In this document: in pieces, positions 3,089 to 40,767 of the stretch
How the letters are laid out: each line of letters opens with the position of its first letter
How positions within the stretch are numbered: position 1 is the first letter of the stretch
Source of the DNA: Macrostomum lignano
Taxonomy: Eukaryota
Assembly: GCA_002269645.1 (NCBI GenBank)
Contig: NIVC01001191.1
Span: 1 to 42,434 of the forward strand
Direction of reading: 5' to 3'
DNA: 42,434 nt
The notes under the pieces: model-generated
Told to the model about the DNA's origin: nothing
Database searches by the model: none
Seen by the model: only the letters and a program-made list of their open reading frames with translations
Made by a program: the position numbers and the translations under genes

Positions 3089-6000
3089 GTAATGATTGGT
3101 AACTCATGGCCTCCGATGCCGTCCAGATTATTTCTGAACTTAACAAATGCTCTCAAATGTCACCATCTGCATGCACCGTTTTGCTTTACTTTGGAAGACA
3201 TGATACAAGGCTACTCGTATTTCAAAATATTCCAAATATATATTTGTAAAACAAAATTTTACATGATATGAATTTCCATAATTTTTCTGTAACTCTGTAC
3301 GTTTTTGAAAGAAACATTTACAAAATGTGAAATTTCACTAAAAGGTACACAAATTAATACTTAATTCCTCTTAGAGAACAATTTTTTTTCACATTTTTGC
3401 ATTTCCTGATTACCAAGAATAGTTTTGAGTAGGCGAAATTTTGAGTACTTGAAGTTTTTTAGGATTTGAGAAAAACGATTCCATTTAATCCCAAAATCGA
3501 CGTCCCGTCTCTTCAGTCGGCCGCCGAGGTCGCAAGGGCAGCCGCGCGTCCTCGACAGTGAGCGACCCGCAGCGCCTGCAGCTGCTGGAGCTGGCCAAGA
3601 CAGACTTCGAGAATCTGCACTTCATCGACGAGGCCTCGATGGAGTGCGGCGAGTCGCTGGACTTGGACAGCATCGACGTGCTCGGATTGGTCCGCATGAA
3701 CGTCAGCGGCACCCGGTTCGAGGTGCTGCGCTCGACTCTGCTGAAGCAGCGGCACATCTACGATAAGCTTCTGCACGACGGCATCTACAGGGCAGCTCAG
3801 CAGGAGTACTACTTCGACAGGGACCCGGCCATCTTCAAGATCGTGCTGTGGTACTGCCGCTACGGTGAGCGATGAGATGTTGACAGCTTCACAGTCTCGG
3901 GCTGTAAACTTATCCGAATAGCGTGGCAGATAAATAAGTTAAGCTTCTTCAAGTCATTGCGACAGTTGTACCTATGAGACAAGTAGTTATTCATATTTTG
4001 CTGACCTTGGGGGAAGCATACATGTATACGAGCGTACGAAGAGAGTACAGAGGTCCTGACCTTTGCATCTACTGGCATGTACACACCTCTGTGAGGTCTG
4101 GCCCGAGCCCTTGCATCGTGAATGGCAAGTTCGAGGGTAATATCGATCTGCTACTAAACCCAGGGGCAGGTGATACAGGTATACAGCACTTCAGGCATTA
4201 TACAGTTGTCTAGACCAGTTGTTGGCCAGTTTTATCAGGTCAGGCGCTAACTATAAAAACCCAAAAAACCTATAAAAACCGATAAAAAAATAAAATCCAA
4301 ACCTTCAAGGTGAACTGCACGTACCGCATCACTATTGCGGCCCGCTGCTGGAGCGCGAGCTGGCCCTGTGGGGTGTCCAATCCGTGATCGAGATCCAGAA
4401 CTGCTGCGTGAGCCACCTCATGGATACTAAAAGTCGTCTGGTCAGCTTGAAGAAGTTTGAAAATTTCTTCAAAGAAGAGATGGAAAGCGAGCCGCTGCTG
4501 CTGCCTGAGGGGTGGAGTTTGACGATCCGCTGGACCTTGACCCGGCCAAGGCGCATGGTTCGTAAATAATGGAGTGATCCTTGGGACTTCCAGATGCTTG
4601 ATATTCCTTGTTTAGTCTCTAAGTCTCTAGTATGGGACTCCCATATCTTGCTGAACTGATTCTAGGAAGGGATCTTCTGTTGGATCGAATTGAAAACTAA
4701 AAGAGGCGGATAACCTTGGCCAGAGAATCGGGTGCATGAGTGCGAGCCAGAGGAGGGTAGAGAGGAGAGAGAAGAGAGAGGAGAGGAGAGAGGGGAATAG
4801 ATGGGAGAGAAGGAAGAGAAGACGAGAGAAGAGGTAAGAGAGAAGATTGGAGAGAAGAGACACAAACCTTGAGCGGGGCCGGATTGCTATTGTGAAGTTT
4901 CAAAGGACCCGAAGGCCAGATAGAGAGGCTTCGCGTGCCGCATGTGGCCCCCGGGCTGGGGTTTGCCGACACCTGAAGTAAAGTGACAATCTAACTCAAG
5001 CAAAATCGAATCGAGAATTTCAGTCTATCTTCCTTCCGAAGCAAGCGATAAAACAGCTTCCTATATAGGAAAATCCCACTAGATCTGTCGTAGTATTTCT
5101 GGACGAAAATAGCTTACGAGCTCGCATAATCCTTGTTTTCCAACGACACCAAATCTTGTCTCAAAAGCGCTTCACCAGTTTTGAAATCTTCTTTAATTCC
5201 AACTCGCCGCAGGATGGCGCCGGCGCGTGAAAGACGCCCTGGCCGCTCTGCGCCGTCGCTGCTGGAAGATTCTGGACCATCCGTCGTCCAGCTTCCCGGC
5301 GGCCGTGTACGCCGTCATCCTGAGCGTCACGGTGCTTTACACGGTGTTCAGCTTCGTGGCCAGCACCTCGGATCGATTTCAGCGGCCGATGTCGCCAGGC
5401 GAGATTGCATTCTACTCGGCCAAGCATCCGGCCTGGTACGGAAACCACACGAACGCCAACCCGCAGATCAAGGTGGACTGGCTCACCTTCCCAGACTGGA
5501 TTGCTTTCGGCGTGCTCACGTTCGACTTTTTCGTCCGCCTGCTCTTCTGCAAGAACAAGCTGGCCTACTTTAAAAACAATTACACTATCATCGACATGCT
5601 GTCTATTTTGCCATTCTACGTGAACGAGCTGCTGAAGTTCTTCTTTGGCATTATCGAGTTCTCGGACAGTAACGATTTCGGCCTGGCTGAGTACATCTCC
5701 TTCCTGAAGATCGCGCTGTTCATGCGGCTGCTTCGAATCGGCCGGCACTACAGAGGCCTGCAGGTGCTCATTTATACTCTGCGCACCTCATTCCGAGACC
5801 TCATGCTCATGGGAGTATTTGTTGCCCTGGGCACCCTGCTGTTCAGCACGTTGATCTTCTTCTGCGAGAAATCCCGCAACGAGCCGACCAGCGGAGGCGG
5901 CGGTGGCAAGGGAGGTGCCGTTGACTGTTCAAAGTGCCCGGGCGGTGGCGGCGGGGCAACGGAGGTGGCAGACAGGGCACCGACTCGCGTTTCACCTCCA

Positions 6001-9000
6001 TGTTCGACGGCTTCTGGTGGTCGCTGGTTACCATGACAACAGTAGGCTACGGAGACCTGGTACCGCAGACCAACGCTGGTAAGTTGTTACGAAAATGCTG
6101 CTATGCTGGGAGTCAGACAAAGCCAGACGGTTGGGGTCTCTGGGCATGTTCCTGACCGATTGGTTGGGTTCTCTGGGCATGTTCCTGACCGATTGGTGGG
6201 GGTGTCTGGGCATGTTCCGGACCGATTGGTTGGGGTGTCTGGGCATGTTCCTGACCGATTGGTTGGGTTCTCTGGGCATGTTCCTGACCGATTGGTTGGG
6301 TTCTCTGGGCATGTTCCGGACCGATTGGTTGGGGTGTCTGAGCATGTTCCTGACCGATTGGTTGGGTTCTCTGGGCATGTTCCTGACCGATTGGTTGGGG
6401 TGCCTGGGCCTTTTCCTGACCTATCGGTTTGGGACCCCTGGTCGGCAGCTTTCTCAATATCCAGCCCACTCCGCCCAAACGGCAGCATTTGACTGAAGTT
6501 TTCTTGAAGCTTTGATTTTCAGTCCCGATCATCGCCATCAGAGATTGGAGCATTGGAGAATGGAGAGCACCTGGAGCCAGAATAAATTGATTAATTTCCA
6601 AATGGCCGGCTTCACTCCCCCTCTTCGCATGGTATTCTTTTCCTTCTATCAAAATTTTACAATCACTTCTACTGCAGTTGCTTTTGTTTCCTATATTTCC
6701 ACGCGTGCAGCCCTGAAAGCACTGGCCCCTGCCCTACCATTGGGTTTCAAGATGCAGATTCAGATGCAGTAACTTCAAGGGTTTGCTGCATTTTATGCCG
6801 GTTTTACTCTTTAAAAAAGAAGAATGTTTAGCCCAGCAACAGACAGGCTTTAAGGACGCTGCGCACTCAGCTTGCCATCGACATCAAAGTCAGAAGCAGT
6901 CTGTCAGTCAGTCAGTCAGTCAGAGTTGCCCAGTTTTTAATTCTGATTAAAGGGGCAAAATCTGGAGAAAATTACAACCGAAATTTAACGCACATTCGCT
7001 CACCCATTCCCCAGTTCCCCAGTTGCGCCCACTTGGATGCTTACAAGTAATACGGGCAATTCTGCTTGTATTTGGTGCAGAAATCCAATGCACTTTTAAT
7101 TTTATAGCGTAAAAAAGTCTAGTAGGAGATAAAAATAGATTCGAATGCAGTTCAAGGCCTGCAGTTCATCCCTGACTGCATGGCACCACGGTCGGTCCGT
7201 CACGCTTGGCCGAATGGTTTACGTTTCAAAATTTCGTGTCCGATTTGACAGACGACCAATTTGCCGCTCGAATACTACATCGATCAACTGCGGACCATGG
7301 TAGCGACCCCCTTCAGCTCCCACTTGAAGCCAGAGTCTATAGTTAGGTTATGAAATTCGTCAACTGTTTCCACTCCAGGCACTAAAGTTTTCAGAGTCCT
7401 CCACGACCGCAATGGAAGGCTGTTTTCCACTCCAGTTACTTAGTCCTTCGGATTCCATGACTGATGCAATGAAAAACGCTTAGCTACTTGTTGGCTGAAT
7501 CAACAAGTCCGCTTATGGAACCAAGACTATCGTCGTCCTTTGTTCATCCAGCAGTTCAAATTCACGACTGCTACGAGTATCTACAGCTGATAGAAATTCG
7601 TTCATTTAGAACATTTTGGCGTCTAGCGCACGCCAGCTACATACACTGGCTCTTAGGAATTAATGAATTAAGATAGGGGATTGCATAAATAATCTACTGT
7701 AGCCATTGGCCCGGCAAAAATAACCCAATATTCCTGAGGGATGGGGTGTAGTCCAGGAAGCAGTACCAACGATGAGCATCAGTTGCCTGACACTATTGAT
7801 TGACTGGTATTGTAGTGGCTTAATCCAGGGAATAAAACAGAATTAATCCGAATCGGGAAGCGGACGGAGGAACCACGAGCTATATTGGGATGGGCAGAAA
7901 GGGAGATTCACTGGTCGCGGCAGGGAAAATTACGAAGCTAAAACATCTTTAAAAGCAGTAGCTATTGCGAAGATTATTGCTCTAATCCACCATTTTTTCG
8001 CTGCTTTGAAGGGGCAGACAAAAGGACAGTCTTCGAGTTTGTACTACACAGGATATAAAATCGAGTGGCGGAAAAATTCATTCTATGATTTCGTCAGTTT
8101 CGGGAGCTGCGCATTTCTTAAAGTTCTACTAGAAGTAGCAACCTTTGATCGTGTTAAGAATACTTTACTGAATATTGGGTACTGGAATTGGTGTACTGAA
8201 TATTGTACAGGATCTTATGTACTGAATATATTACAAGATCTTGTGTACTGAATATTGCACAGGATCTCGTGAACTAAGTATTGTACAGGATCTTATGTAC
8301 TGAAATATATTACAGGATCTTGTGTACTGAATATTGCACAGGATCTAGTGAACTAAGTATTGTACAGGATCTTATGTACTGAAATATATTACAGGATCTT
8401 GTGTACTGAATATTGCACAGGATCTCGTGAACTAAGTATTGTACAGGATCTTATGTACTGAAATATATTACAGGATCTTGTGTACTGAATATTGTACAGG
8501 ATCTTTTGTACTGAATATTGTACAGGATCTTGTGTACTGAATATTGTACAGGATCTTGTGTACTGAATATTGTACAGGATCTTGTGTACTGAATATTGTA
8601 CAAGATCTTGTGTACTGAATATTGTACAGGTTCGTATACGATTTGTGCACCAACACGCGTACTTCTTCTTGCACAAAATGCTGTACAGAAACAAACAGGC
8701 TTTTTAACCAGTTAAATCTAACAGTCCACAGAGTACAAAATCATTGAACTCCACAATAAAGCTGCTCCCTCTGCACTCCTAAACGCAGGTCGCATCGTCG
8801 GATCCGCCTGCGCCCTGAGCGGCCTCCTGCTGATCGCCTTCACCGTGCCCATCCTGGTGAACCACTTCATGCTCTACTATTCGCACTCTCAAATTGTGCA
8901 CGTGTCCAAGAGCTCCGTGCAGGAGTACGCCACCAAGGCGCTGCTGGCTAAGGTGAACAGTTTTGCTGGCGGCAAAGTCAAGCAGATGCGCAAACTGGTG

Positions 9001-9714: not shown

Positions 9715-10970
9715 TTAAATAATCGCCAAAGCTAATTGCCATTGTGTCTGGATGAAGTGTACTCGATGTAAAGTTAGACACGTCGCTCTGAGTTGAATAC
9801 AGATTGCTCACCAAGGTTTCGGGAATACATTCCGACTGGTGACTGCAAAATAGAAATGGTTCTCCGAACGCTAATTGCTGTTAAACATTTAAGTTGAAAT
9901 TTTAATATTTTTATTTTCTTATGATAAGCCCTAGACTAAAATACGTTTAAATAAATGGAGTTTGACTGCGTGTCATTTGCCGCATCGTTGGTTTTTGTCA
10001 TCAAACGCATTCTGAAAAGTCAGCCAGCCTAATTGTGAAGTTCCTAACTGTTCTTAACTTTCTAGTTTATTCTCAGCGCAACAAACTCTTACAATCTTTT
10101 TGGGTCAATTTTTGTTTTTAATTGACTTTTGCAGCTGCTTAGCACCCTCGCTGTCTGTCTGTCTGCTTGTTCTGCTTGTATTTTTCTGTCCATCAATTGC
10201 AGTGTCATAATAAACTACTCTTATCATTGTGAAATTCTCGCATCCCTTGATAAATTTTATTTTTTGTTTAGTTCTGCAAAAGGCTAGATATTGATGTAAA
10301 TCGTCTAAAATTACTCGAGAAATTCACTGCTCTCATACCTTTATGATCTGTTAAAGCATTGAGTCATTTGAAATTAAGTAGTGTAATTTTAGAATCCCAA
10401 CAAAATGCTCAAATTAATCCCATCTGCTACATCAGAGTTGTCATCTAAATGCATTATTTGTCCATTTTTTGAAGAGCAGTTCAATGCCCAGCTCCTGCGT
10501 CTGACATTCATCCATTTGCACTTTTGAGTCTGAATCAACCCGACCTTCCCCATACACCTTTATTTTGTTTTCGTTGTCCTAATTGACTGTTTAAAGGCGA
10601 TAAAAGTGGCATTCGGTTTTTTCACGTCACATCAAGTCTCAGTTTTAAAATACACAGTTTTGTGGATTGTGAGAAAAATAGACAAATAATTAACAACTGA
10701 GAGCCTCCCATGCCGCTTTGCGCTCTTTCTGCCTTGCTTCCTCATGACTTTGCAACTGGGATAGCCCCCCCCCCCCCAGTGATCTTCACTGGCTGCCCGC
10801 GTCTCTAGTGTACGAGTACACTGACCCCACACCCACCACCCAACACTCCGCTGCTGCAGAGGTACGCAGAGTCCATTAAATTTCAGACCTATACCTTGCT
10901 TCTCTTCATCATTATAATCATCATACTTCCCAGCATCGTCAGTCTCCAACAGCTGACAATAAGCAGTCAG

Positions 10971-12292
10971 ATGCAGCTGGCAAATTTCATTGCAGCAGTG
11001 GCGGGCGCAGCGGCCGTTCTTGCTGTGCAACCAGCGACTGCCGATAATGAAATTTTCATCCTGGACTCGAGTGACAGGCTCGCCCACGCCGACTCTCAGC
11101 ACGTTAAGTAAGAGAGCTTCGACTACTAGTTGATTATGTGGTAGCTGTTTTGCGTGTGCGTGTGTAACCATCGCCCAGTTCGCCGAGTCGCCGTGGCGGA
11201 GGAATTCGGCGACCTCCACGCGCCGCCGCCAGAGATCGGCAACTTCAAGATCAGATGGATTAACTGAGGAGCAGAACAGATGCGCGGCGGCCTCACAGGC
11301 CGAGCAAATGTCCTGGATCGAAGGGTCCAGACGGTGTCGGTAGCTGGCGAGAAGCATAGAATAACCGCTCCTCAGCTGAGCAAGCCGCGTGCACACACGT
11401 CTGGGGAGCTTGAATTCATTCGTTCTCACTGATGTCCGGTCAGACTCCAACCCCTTTGTTGGGTCGAAACACGCTTTTTGTGTTAAAACACGCTGCGGAG
11501 ACAAGAGACTTCATAAACCTTCCTTAGCAACACCTCACCGCGACGTCGCAAAAGTGACCAATCGAACAAAGGTTCATGATGGAGCTGCAGTATCGCTTGG
11601 TTCCATAGTACGCTTGTACCAGAAAATCAGGACTCGATTTCCTAAGTAACGACCAGGGAAGCTCAGTACTCGGAAGTACCCACATCAGTTTGGGGCTTTT
11701 GCACGAAAATTAACCCCGAGGCTTGTCGTGCTTTTCACCACCTCCATGAAGGCCAACCCCTAAGGCCCAGAGTGTGTGCATGTGAGAAAGTTGTGCGTGT
11801 TCCGGTGTCAGTAAAAATGTGTAGCTGCTTGCCTCCTAGCGTGCTGTGAGTTGACTGTCGAACTGACCCATCAAACTAACCAACTAACGATTGTGAGAGC
11901 CAATCTCGACATTCGTCTGTGATGTATCTGCGAGCCTTTGTGATTGCTGTGGAACGGTGTCACGAAAGGCCTTGAGCCAGAGTATCCAACGCTCTGCCAC
12001 TACACATATCATACATTACATGTAAGATAAACTCTGCCTTCAACACGCGCATCCCCGCAGGCGGCAGATGCAGCTGCAGTACCTGAACCTTAACTGTCAG
12101 TCGGATATCGAGTGCGGCAGCTACCTCTATTGCAACCAGAGGAGAAAGCGGTGCTGCGCCCCGCACGGTGTCAACTGCGTGAGCCACCTGGACTGCTGCC
12201 AGGCAGCCAGGCACACCTGTCGCCCGGTTGACGACGTCACGGTGAACCGGCTGTGCGTGCTGGGCAGGCACGTGGGTCGGAGGCATCCTTAG
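10971..12292 (+). CDS. Secreted cysteine-rich (10 Cys, knottin/ICK-like) propeptide, 2 exons, 122 aa
   Basis: Exon 1 10971-11107 encodes a signal peptide (MQLANFIAAVAGAAAVLAVQPATA) and pro-region, donor AA|GTAAGA phase 2. Exon 2 12061-12292 follows a ccccgcAG acceptor in phase 2. Splicing creates a KR site. AATAAA near 12400. Confidence 0.75.
11125..11490 (-). mobile_element. Degenerate 3' fragment of a non-LTR retrotransposon (LINE) ORF2 in the peptide-gene intron
   Basis: - strand peptide NEFKLPRRVCTRLAQLRSGYSMLLASYRHRLDPSIQDICSACEAAAHLFC...DLWRRRVEVAEFL matches the post-RT C-terminal LPR..LAQLRSG..CxxC..HLF region of invertebrate LINEs (RTEX-like from memory). Confidence 0.75.
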
Positions 12293-12384
12293 GGCGAATG
12301 TCTACGATAGACTGACAAAATGATAAAATTAAATAGACAAAAGGAGACATCCGAAAAAAATGGTCAGAGACTAATAGTCCATGG

Positions 12385-12410
12385 CTTATTTATTAAACAA
12401 ATAAAATATT
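12385..12410. terminator. Back-to-back polyadenylation signals for convergent transcripts
   Basis: ttatttattaaacaaataaaat contains AATAAA on the + strand and TTTATT (AATAAA on the - strand). Confidence 0.4.
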
Positions 12411-12602: not shown

Positions 12603-13427
12603 CTAGCCCTCAAGGGTGGAGTTGAGTTCAAGCTCGACCGCATCGGAACTAGAAGCTTGAATACCGACTCTCGCCCAGAGCACGATCAAGGCGATCAGGA
12701 GTCCTGCCGTGACCGCCACTGCCGCCAACGTGGCCACTCTCACAGCCCCGCTGTCCTCGAGTAGGTGCTCGGCATGGTGCTCCATGGAACAGTTGTTGAT
12801 TGCGACAGAAATCTTCCTCCAGTGACAGCAGTGGCTGCGGCGTCGGCGACAGGCCTCAAGCGTTGGTCTGATTCGAAAGCAGACCTTGCTCTTGAGCCTG
12901 ATGACGTGAGGTTGAGAATCAGCTGTCGGTACAGGTTGAGACACGTACTGATACGTGATCGGTACAGGTTGAGACACTATCGGTACAGGTTGAGACACTG
13001 TCGGTACAGGTTGAGACACTCGGTACGGTACCGGTTGAGACACTGTCGGTACAGGTTGAGACACTGTCGGTACAGGTTGAGACACTGTCGGTACCGGTTG
13101 AGACACTGTCGGTACCGGTTGAGACACTGTCTGTACAGGTTGAGACACTGTCGGTACAGGTTGAGACACTATCGGTACAGGTTGAGACACTGTCGGTACA
13201 GGTTGAGACACTGTCGGTACAGGTTGAGAATCAACAATTTTATGCTTAGATTGTACCTGTGATGATTTATATTCCATGGTTTCAGGCTGAGGCACTGCTC
13301 CTACAGTCATGGATTCCTTTGAATTTAGTTGAACTATTGTTGCTACCGGAGTCTCTGGACGGTCATACAGAGGCTGGACGCTGGGCCGACGGAACAGCGA
13401 CCGCCGAATATGAAGCACCTGCCTCAT
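12603..13427 (-). CDS. Possible membrane protein with (SQPVPTV)n mucin-like repeat and a C-terminal TM helix, 274 aa
   Basis: Continuous ORF with hydrophobic VATLAAVAVTAGLLIALIVLW. Repeat indels preserve the frame. No signal peptide, and the repeat could instead be intronic. Confidence 0.4.
   Translation of the reverse strand: MRQVLHIRRSLFRRPSVQPLYDRPETPVATIVQLNSKESMTVGAVPQPETMEYKSSQVQSKHKIVDSQPVPTVSQPVPTVSQPVPIVSQPVPTVSQPVQTVSQPVPTVSQPVPTVSQPVPTVSQPVPTVSQPVPYRVSQPVPTVSQPVPIVSQPVPITYQYVSQPVPTADSQPHVIRLKSKVCFRIRPTLEACRRRRSHCCHWRKISVAINNCSMEHHAEHLLEDSGAVRVATLAAVAVTAGLLIALIVLWARVGIQASSSDAVELELNSTLEG
12921..13230 (+). repeat. 21-bp tandem repeat (ctgtcggtacaggttgagaca), about 14 copies
   Basis: Directly visible; one 24-bp and one 33-bp variant unit. 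Confidence 0.95.
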
Positions 13428-13913: not shown

Positions 13914-14515
13914 TACTTTTTTGCGATTGAATTCGTCCAAACTCCAAAACCTTTCGTCCACTAACGCTTTCTTAATGGGAGCTAAATTTAGATCATACCA
14001 AAGACAACTGTGTTCACGCAAAACGGTTCATCCAGTTTGTAAAACATTTCGTCTAAACCCTTCGTCCAAACAGCTGGAAGCTTCTCAATGCGCCCGGTTT
14101 GAACGTAGGTGTCGAAAATCGTTTTGGCTGTCTTTCTCTTGATCCCAAGGATATCGGCCAGTTGTTTCCAATCGCGGCCTTCTTCAACAGCCAAGGCTAA
14201 TCGCCTGCGGTCTTCGTTTGACACTGGATGGTAGGGGCCTCGGTTCATCTTCGACTGTTTTGCCGGGTTCAGAATGGAAGATATGCGTTGCTGTAGCTGT
14301 AGTGGTAGCAAAAGCGAACTGTCAATTGGGTGTTAACTATGGTAGGAACAGTACACTCGGTCTCTAGTCTAGGGGACGAAATGTTTTACAAACTGGATGA
14401 ACCGTTTTGCGTGAACACAGTTGTCTTTGGTATGATCTAAATTTAGCTTCCATTAAGAAAGCATCTGTGGACGAAAGGTTTTGCAGTTTGGACGAATTCA
14501 CTCGCAAAAAAAGTA
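13914..14515 (-). mobile_element. Internally deleted Tc1/mariner-superfamily DNA transposon, about 140-bp TIRs, TA-flanked, retaining the transposase N-terminal HTH
   Basis: 13914-14053 is inverted at 14375-14515, with TA on both sides. The - strand ORF from 14248 reads MNRGPYHPVSNEDRRRLALAVEEGRDWKQLADILGIKRKTAKTIFDTYVQTGRIEKLP (Tc1-like HTH) and then runs into the TIR. No DDE domain. Confidence 0.85.

Positions 14516-18534: not shown

Positions 18535-40767
<22,233 letters not shown>

Follow-up and report, generated by a model that had tools for sequence, protein, structure and literature searches.

The 42,434-nt stretch of Macrostomum lignano DNA considered here (contig NIVC01001191.1; hereafter the window) contains, on its forward strand between positions 10971 and 12292, a two-exon gene that an earlier note, made from the sequence alone, had proposed to encode the precursor of a toxin- or neuropeptide-like peptide with ten cysteines. 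We read and translated this region directly and confirm that the two exons form a genuine protein-coding gene. Its 122-residue product has the predicted layout of a secreted, proteolytically processed, disulfide-rich mini-protein and falls in a small, unnamed family that Platyhelminthes and Nemertea share. The elements of the gene, including the grand average of hydropathy (GRAVY) and isoelectric point (pI) of its N-terminal segments, are as follows.

10971–11042 (+): start codon and signal-peptide-like segment, residues 1–24 (MQLANFIAAVAGAAAVLAVQPATA); GRAVY +1.43, small residues at −3/−1, predicted cut after A-T-A
11043–11107 (+): acidic pro-piece D25–V45 (pI 4.3) and bases 1–2 of the K46 codon, at the end of exon 1
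11108–12060 (+): intron of 953 nt, phase 2, GTAAGA...CCCCGCAG, with GT/AG boundaries
12061–12064 (+): last base of K46 and R47, a predicted dibasic K-R proprotein-convertase site; R47 is invariant in the four-member alignment
12065–12094 (+): ten-residue lead QMQLQYLNLN, N-terminus of the mature protein, conserved in length in the alignment and predicted as a short helix in both AlphaFold models
12095–12256 (+): ten-cysteine domain C58–C111, comprising a four-cysteine N-terminal part, the CCAPHG motif and a six-cysteine, cystine-knot-like part C78–C111, as delimited by cysteine positions, invariant columns, models and Foldseek
12257–12292 (+): C-terminal tail VLGRHV-G-RR-HP, not conserved, with a candidate amidation signal G118-R119-R120 at 12275–12283 and the TAG stop at 12290–12292
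12328–12405 (+): candidate poly(A) signals in the 3' untranslated region, by pattern position only: ATTAAA 12328–12333, ATTAAA 12392–12397 and AATAAA 12400–12405

Exon 1 (10971–11107, + strand, 137 nt) opens with ATG and closes with ...CAC GTT AA/GTAAGA (the slash marking the exon boundary, with the donor GT at 11108), while exon 2 (12061–12292, + strand, 232 nt) is preceded by the acceptor CATCCCCGCAG/G, the AG of which lies at 12059–12060. Joined, they give 369 nt, that is 122 codons plus TAG in frame, and the candidate poly(A) signals follow 36–108 nt past the stop. Without splicing, exon 1 continues directly into a TAA. The frame of exon 2 is shut by a stop at about 12021, 5' of 12061, and since the AG at 12059–12060 is the sole one between that stop and exon 2, it is the only usable acceptor and the intron boundaries are essentially forced. 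The junction splits the K46 codon as AA/G, and the complete codons of exon 2 begin with R47; the K-R site therefore straddles the junction. Both the in-frame join with canonical GT/AG boundaries and the creation of the K-R site by splicing had been claimed in the earlier note, and our translation reproduces its protein residue for residue.

The gene had also been called hidden and invisible as a single open reading frame (ORF). This is true of an ORF listing, but gene predictors had already found it: an identical 122-residue protein from Macrostomum lignano is deposited in UniRef as A0A1I8HBI9. Together with three independent homologues, described below, this identical model places the gene far beyond chance. 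The deposited entry carries the automatic name "SMB domain-containing protein". Like the somatomedin B domain, the M. lignano protein is a small, presumably secreted and disulfide-knotted module, but as read from its sequence it lacks the C-x-C start and has ten cysteines instead of eight, and neither the protein nor its relatives matched Pfam Somatomedin_B at expectation values (E) up to 10. We take the name to be an over-prediction, and the present finding corrects it.

An antisense ORF of 290 residues (10632–11504, − strand) extends across exon 1 and 400 nt into the intron. It has no Pfam match and was treated as unrelated to the gene; its intronic part (…LAQLRSGYSMLLASYRHRLDPSIQDICSACE…) resembles by eye the C-terminal tail of ORF2 proteins of non-LTR (long terminal repeat) retrotransposons.

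An exhaustive phmmer (HMMER) search of 1.84 billion representatives returned eight matches at E ≤ 1e-3, the query included, among which three are genuine small homologues (P0005, P0007 and P0008; E 4e-6 to 2e-4). P0007 comes from the nemertean Lineus longissimus (XP_064638886, "uncharacterized protein LOC135494651"), P0005 is carried by a 2.6-kb Joint Genome Institute (JGI) metagenome contig, and P0008 by a 1.4-kb Logan contig (L003) from run SRR3581107. No taxa were assigned to P0005 and P0008, and the cross-phylum comparison is that between M. lignano and Lineus longissimus. Of the other matches, P0002, P0003 and P0006 were read and rejected as repetitive proteins with summed repeat scores; P0004, listed at 7608 residues with eight matched stretches, was rejected on its listing without its sequence being read. 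Neither the 50%-identity representatives covered by this search nor the window showed a second copy; within the window tblastn returned only the two exons and other weak rows in the 14-bp satellite at 22.4–24.2 kb. When metagenome contigs were scanned for the family pattern, 291 matches to it turned up, none of them a relative, and the contig carrying P0005 was missed as well. Animal coverage of the protein database is thin: in a collection of 5.8 billion proteins a Dickkopf bait, spanning the first cysteine-rich domain (CRD1) of this well-known family, recovered only three exon fragments, so the four members are a lower bound for the family and negatives for animal proteins from these collections call for caution. 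Literature queries with the motif strings, A0A1I8HBI9, LOC135494651 and SRR3581107 gave no match.

All four members share the frame C-x5-C-x4/5-C-x6-CC-x6-C-x5-CC-x5/6-C-x7/11-C and the motif CC[AS]PHG, in which P-H-G is invariant. Also invariant are R47, L54 and nine of the ten cysteines, the tenth being only offset by a longer loop in M. lignano. The distance from the invariant arginine to the first cysteine is exactly 10 residues in every member, with L54 fixed within this lead, and the arginine always sits in a basic context (VKR, RRSR, KKYR and VRQR) that would suit processing by a furin-type or related convertase. A profile of the four sequences scores its members at E 1e-22 to 1e-28, a circular result in that the profile was built from the same four sequences. 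Overall identity in the family is 30–40%, with the invariant motif retained across two phyla.

The alignments with the homologues span the junction residue 46 (query 24–99 and 25–101 by phmmer; 22–99 by BLASTP with Lineus). L003 encodes the whole P0008 precursor without interruption: read from an in-frame ATG further upstream, it runs from MASSRKLLMYTLVVMVMLSVSCNCARA/EEEDDEE... (a signal-like end, A-R-A/EEE) through an acidic pro-piece and a basic site into the cysteine domain. A phase-2 intron lies 7 codons 5' of the invariant arginine both in Lineus (GC/GTAAGT...TTTCAG/A ATG CGT) and in metagenome contig L002 (TTTCAG/G GTT CGA); the M. lignano intron, likewise of phase 2, lies 1 codon 5' of this arginine, with a linker 6 residues shorter than in Lineus and L002. 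In these three loci the basic site and the cysteine domain form a single terminal exon. About 150 nt past the last exon of the Lineus locus (L001, 19342–19392) tblastn gave a weak echo of the C6–C9 region (YTCISNDNSCSEELIGG, E 0.01), which may stem from a duplicated exon now decayed or else be a chance match.

In the 122-residue protein the cysteines occupy positions 58, 64, 70, 77, 78, 85, 91, 92, 99 and 111, and the predicted mature protein, Q48–P122, has 75 residues, a mass of 8.6 kDa and a pI of 8.8. The pro-piece 25–45 (pI 4.3) has acidic counterparts in P0008 (pI 4.05) and in Lineus P0007, making three of four members, while the mature domain is basic in all four (pI 8.1–9.1). As in neuropeptide precursors, a hydrophobic N-terminus with A-x-A is followed by a conserved basic site beside a conserved peptide, at which cleavage would take place. 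The earlier description of a hydrophobic, signal-like N-terminus, an acidic pro-piece and a K46-R47 site is thus consistent with the GRAVY and pI values, and its spacing of the last six cysteines, C-x6-C-x5-CC-x6-C-x11-C, agrees with their positions. The two terminal modifications that it suggested fared less well. The N-terminal glutamine is present at Q48, but as a pyroglutamate candidate it is not conserved, the residue after the invariant arginine being Q, A, D and Q in the four members (Gln in 2/4). The G-RR amidation signal is likewise present, but only in the M. lignano tail, a non-conserved region modelled with low confidence. The tails past the tenth cysteine are unrelated (...GRHVGRRHP, ...KNPTPARG, ...INPPPPN and ...RAP), one homologue ending in Gly and two having no signal.

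To the six C-terminal cysteines the earlier note had assigned the inhibitor cystine knot (ICK) pattern of conotoxin VI/VII and agatoxin-like peptides. Knottin loops fall in the range of about C-x3-7-C-x3-6-C-x0-5-C-x1-6-C-x4-13-C, and both C78-x6-C85-x5-C91C92-x6-C99-x11-C111 and the x6/x5/x0/x5/x7 loops of the three homologues lie within it. AlphaFold2, run with the four-sequence alignment on the M. lignano and Lineus domains, predicted a short N-terminal helix and small beta-hairpins in both, with a predicted local distance difference test score (pLDDT) of 87 for Lineus; the last 7 residues of the M. lignano model fall below 50. When the two models were compared with the Protein Data Bank (PDB) by Foldseek, they matched almost only ICK peptides, among them psalmotoxin-1, Pn3a, Hm1a, hanatoxin, the DkTx lobes, atracotoxin and EETI-II, over 25–39 columns with template modelling (TM) scores of 0.57–0.72 (target-normalised) and root-mean-square deviations (rmsd) of 0.7–3 Å. 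The ICK pattern is therefore retained in so far as the spacing fits and the models match knottins, but no match is statistically significant. Membership of a conotoxin VI/VII or agatoxin-like family was not upheld, as no such Pfam model reaches threshold: the toxin matches, at most one member each, are all below it (Conotoxin_I2, E 0.015; Toxin_27, E 0.059; Toxin_12, E 0.71). The earlier note did not recognise the peptide as a named family, and this stands. No Pfam family matches above threshold, and a sequence search of the PDB with the protein and the family profile gave nothing relevant.

The members resemble knottins such as psalmotoxin-1, Pn3a, the DkTx lobes and EETI-II in their last six cysteines (C-x6-C-x5-CC-x5/6-C-x7/11-C), in a predicted small beta-hairpin core that superposes on theirs, and in a predicted precursor with signal, pro-piece and basic cleavage site. 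They differ in adding four cysteines and a conserved 10-residue stretch predicted as a helix, in a domain of 54–62 residues compared with about 30–40, and in being conserved from flatworm to nemertean and not lineage-specific, with no knottin or toxin hidden Markov model (HMM) at threshold. A four-cysteine module plus ICK is plausible and the best available description. Foldseek rows covering the M. lignano model at whole length were headed by two other ten-cysteine, two-module domains of 65–66 residues, the Draxin C-terminal domain (5z5k_B) and the Ascaris carboxypeptidase inhibitor (3fju_B), with rmsd of 8.3 and 4.8 Å, TM of about 0.31–0.35 and E of 0.2–0.9. Kinship with either was rejected, given the high rmsd and the absence of these rows with the better Lineus model.

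Cumulatively, these findings suggest, with a probability of roughly 70%, a genuine two-exon gene for a secreted, convertase-processed, disulfide-rich mini-protein of an unnamed family, likely an endogenous ligand. Secretion, cleavage, disulfide topology and any function we infer from the sequence, as follows. The hydrophobic segment 1–24 would direct import into the endoplasmic reticulum. Five disulfides would form, and while the last six cysteines would probably build a core resembling a cystine knot, an additional small module would come from the first four. In the secretory pathway a furin- or proprotein convertase (PC)-type enzyme would then remove the anionic pro-piece 25–45 after K46-R47, releasing from Q48 a basic protein of about 8.0–8.6 kDa. 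Such a stable mini-protein may act by binding an extracellular target, its most likely role being that of an endogenous, hormone- or cytokine-like ligand or modulator at the cell surface. Conservation across two phyla with an invariant motif leads us to favour this role over that of a fast-evolving venom or seminal-fluid peptide. For the choice between toxin and neuropeptide raised by the earlier note nothing speaks for either; the family motif was absent from 27 supplementary files of a nemertean neuropeptidome (PMC8557429), a weak negative only.

Several observations weigh against this interpretation. Segment 1–24, with its A-T-A before D, is signal-like by composition and not by the output of a signal predictor, and the Lineus RefSeq model has no signal peptide and a first exon of 6 codons, although that model is probably incomplete or mis-annotated at its 5' end. 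Exact-protein look-ups of the 122- and 74-residue products found no M. lignano contigs, and therefore no transcript evidence for the junction. Neither the pyroglutamate nor the amidation feature is conserved across the four members, so that no conserved modification of this kind, as expected of a neuropeptide precursor, was found. The best model of the M. lignano domain has a pLDDT of 76 and the other four models at most 56; every Foldseek E-value is ≥ 0.2 and every probability ≤ 0.77, none being significant, and the connectivity of the knot is a prediction. The term endogenous ligand draws its whole argument from cross-phylum conservation in four sequences, and the combination of acidic pro-piece and cationic mature part would be just as fitting for a defence peptide or a toxin.

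This last point leads to the alternative that survives best, namely that the gene serves exocrine defence; its product would be a cationic knottin, antimicrobial or toxin-like, made by epidermal, rhabdite or pharyngeal glands and neutralised by the anionic pro-piece until cleavage. Keeping in mind that an acidic pro-piece (pI 4.1–4.3) is paired with a basic mature domain (pI 8.1–9.1) across members, that venom ICK peptides and protease-inhibitor knottins make up nearly all of the structural neighbours, and that one member weakly matches Conotoxin_I2 (with weak Toxin_27 and Toxin_12 rows besides), we consider a defence or toxin role unlikely but still a serious rival. The mucus of Lineus longissimus contains ICK toxins, which we also count in its favour. 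On the other side, no toxin family model reaches threshold, no tandem paralogues were detected in the window, and 30–40% identity with an invariant motif over two phyla is unlike the rapidly diversifying arrays of toxins and antimicrobial peptides.

A bolder version of the endogenous-ligand interpretation would see here an ancient, undescribed spiralian peptide-hormone or cytokine family, maybe derived from the Dickkopf (Dkk) CRD1, with the N-terminal helix and the CCAPHG loop as a binding surface; we hold this to be doubtful and offer it as speculation. The cysteine frameworks are strikingly alike. Dkk CRD1 also has ten cysteines, with near-identical C1-C2-C3 and C5-C6-C7C8 loops, the common frame being C-x5-C-x5-C...C(x0/2)C-x6-C-x5-CC-...C...C; the M. 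lignano stretch CQSDIECGSYLYC can be set beside CAEDEECGTDEYC of Dkk1, and the M. lignano domain starts with C..D..CG...YC. Differences are the adjacent C4 and C5, where Dkk has C-x2-C, the missing second cysteine-rich domain (CRD2) and the pro-peptide with its predicted convertase site. To our knowledge, a classical Dickkopf has not been described in the flatworm phylum.

That the protein is itself a divergent, stand-alone Dickkopf CRD1-type protein, an extracellular modulator of, for example, Wnt/LRP-type signalling, is more improbable again. Besides the similar spacing, it can claim the only Pfam match other than the weak toxin rows, Dickkopf_N (PF04706), which was seen in two of four members over positions 1–42 of 51; its 10.3–12.8 bits (E 0.16–0.94) fall short of the gathering cut-off of 25 bits. 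Alignment of the family with four Dkk CRD1 sequences by hhalign gave a probability of 7% over 16 columns, with a Dkk profile of only those four sequences, one of which (Dkk4) was confirmed exactly by PDB entries 5o57 and 9x64. A deeper Dkk profile was attempted and abandoned, the bait having returned only the three exon fragments mentioned above. In a cysteine-preserving shuffle control M. lignano and P0005 reached about the 95th percentile, while P0007 and P0008 scored no better than shuffles. The solved Dkk4 CRD1 structures (5o57, 9x64) were absent from the Foldseek matches of both models, CC[AS]PHG is not a Dkk motif, and no colipase-fold CRD2 follows: the protein stops 11 residues past the tenth cysteine, and no member has a second cysteine domain. 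A Dickkopf relationship was accordingly not established by Pfam, hhalign, the shuffle control or Foldseek. The Dkk CRD1 profile itself weakly matches knottins through its C-terminal half, and the resemblance lies at the level of a shared cysteine framework, the C-terminal half of which is itself knottin-like.

Least probable of all is that the exons are not parts of a single expressed transcript and the model is a gene-prediction artefact or a pseudogene: the exact-protein look-ups retrieved no transcript, the antisense ORF in the intron is possibly a repeat remnant and the window is very rich in repeats, but the reading frame is unbroken, the splice sites match the consensus, all ten cysteines and the family motif are kept, homologues share the architecture and intron design, and an identical model was deposited independently.

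Invertebrate genomes abound in orphan secreted cysteine-rich mini-proteins, and one more would be unsurprising alone. What distinguishes the present gene is an invariant (predicted) processing site together with a motif conserved from flatworm to nemertean, in a family with no Pfam entry, no solved relative and no literature match. Its product is the first described member of an unnamed ten-cysteine secreted-peptide family within the known class of pro-peptide-processed, cystine-knot-like mini-proteins. If it turned out to be a signalling ligand, the spiralian signalling repertoire would gain a new family of disulfide-rich peptides; if it turned out to be a gland product, it would provide a new ten-cysteine knottin scaffold. 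Macrostomum lignano is a model for transgenesis and RNA interference, which makes the function directly testable.

Elsewhere in the window, an ORF about 5 kb upstream on the same strand (5227–6036, +) matches Ion_trans (PF00520, E 1.4e-17) and probably represents one exon of a gene for a voltage-gated-type cation channel. Two ORFs further downstream (26828–27691 and 30285–31289, both +) match thrombospondin type-1 repeats (TSP1_spondin, E 6e-12; TSP1_ADAMTS, E 1.3e-4) and are likely exons of a gene for a large extracellular TSP1-repeat protein. Convergent to the 3' end of the two-exon gene lies an ORF of 274 residues (12603–13427, −) with about 13 copies of SQPVPTV from a 21-bp tandem repeat (12959–13229) and a hydrophobic segment (AGLLIALIVLWA); unmatched in Pfam, it could be an exon of a mucin-like membrane protein or a translated minisatellite. 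An ORF of 107 residues (13988–14311, −) matches the homeodomain-like HTH_23 model (E 3e-5), as is typical where transposases of DNA transposons bind DNA. The window as a whole is extremely rich in mini- and microsatellites, with 34 Tandem Repeats Finder (TRF) rows, one of them for 124 copies of a 14-bp unit, and with strong local swings in GC skew. Repeat arrays lie, for example, at 19751–20345, 22408–24143, 34469–35478 and 35821–37354, and many of the long ORFs listed for the window are translated repeats.

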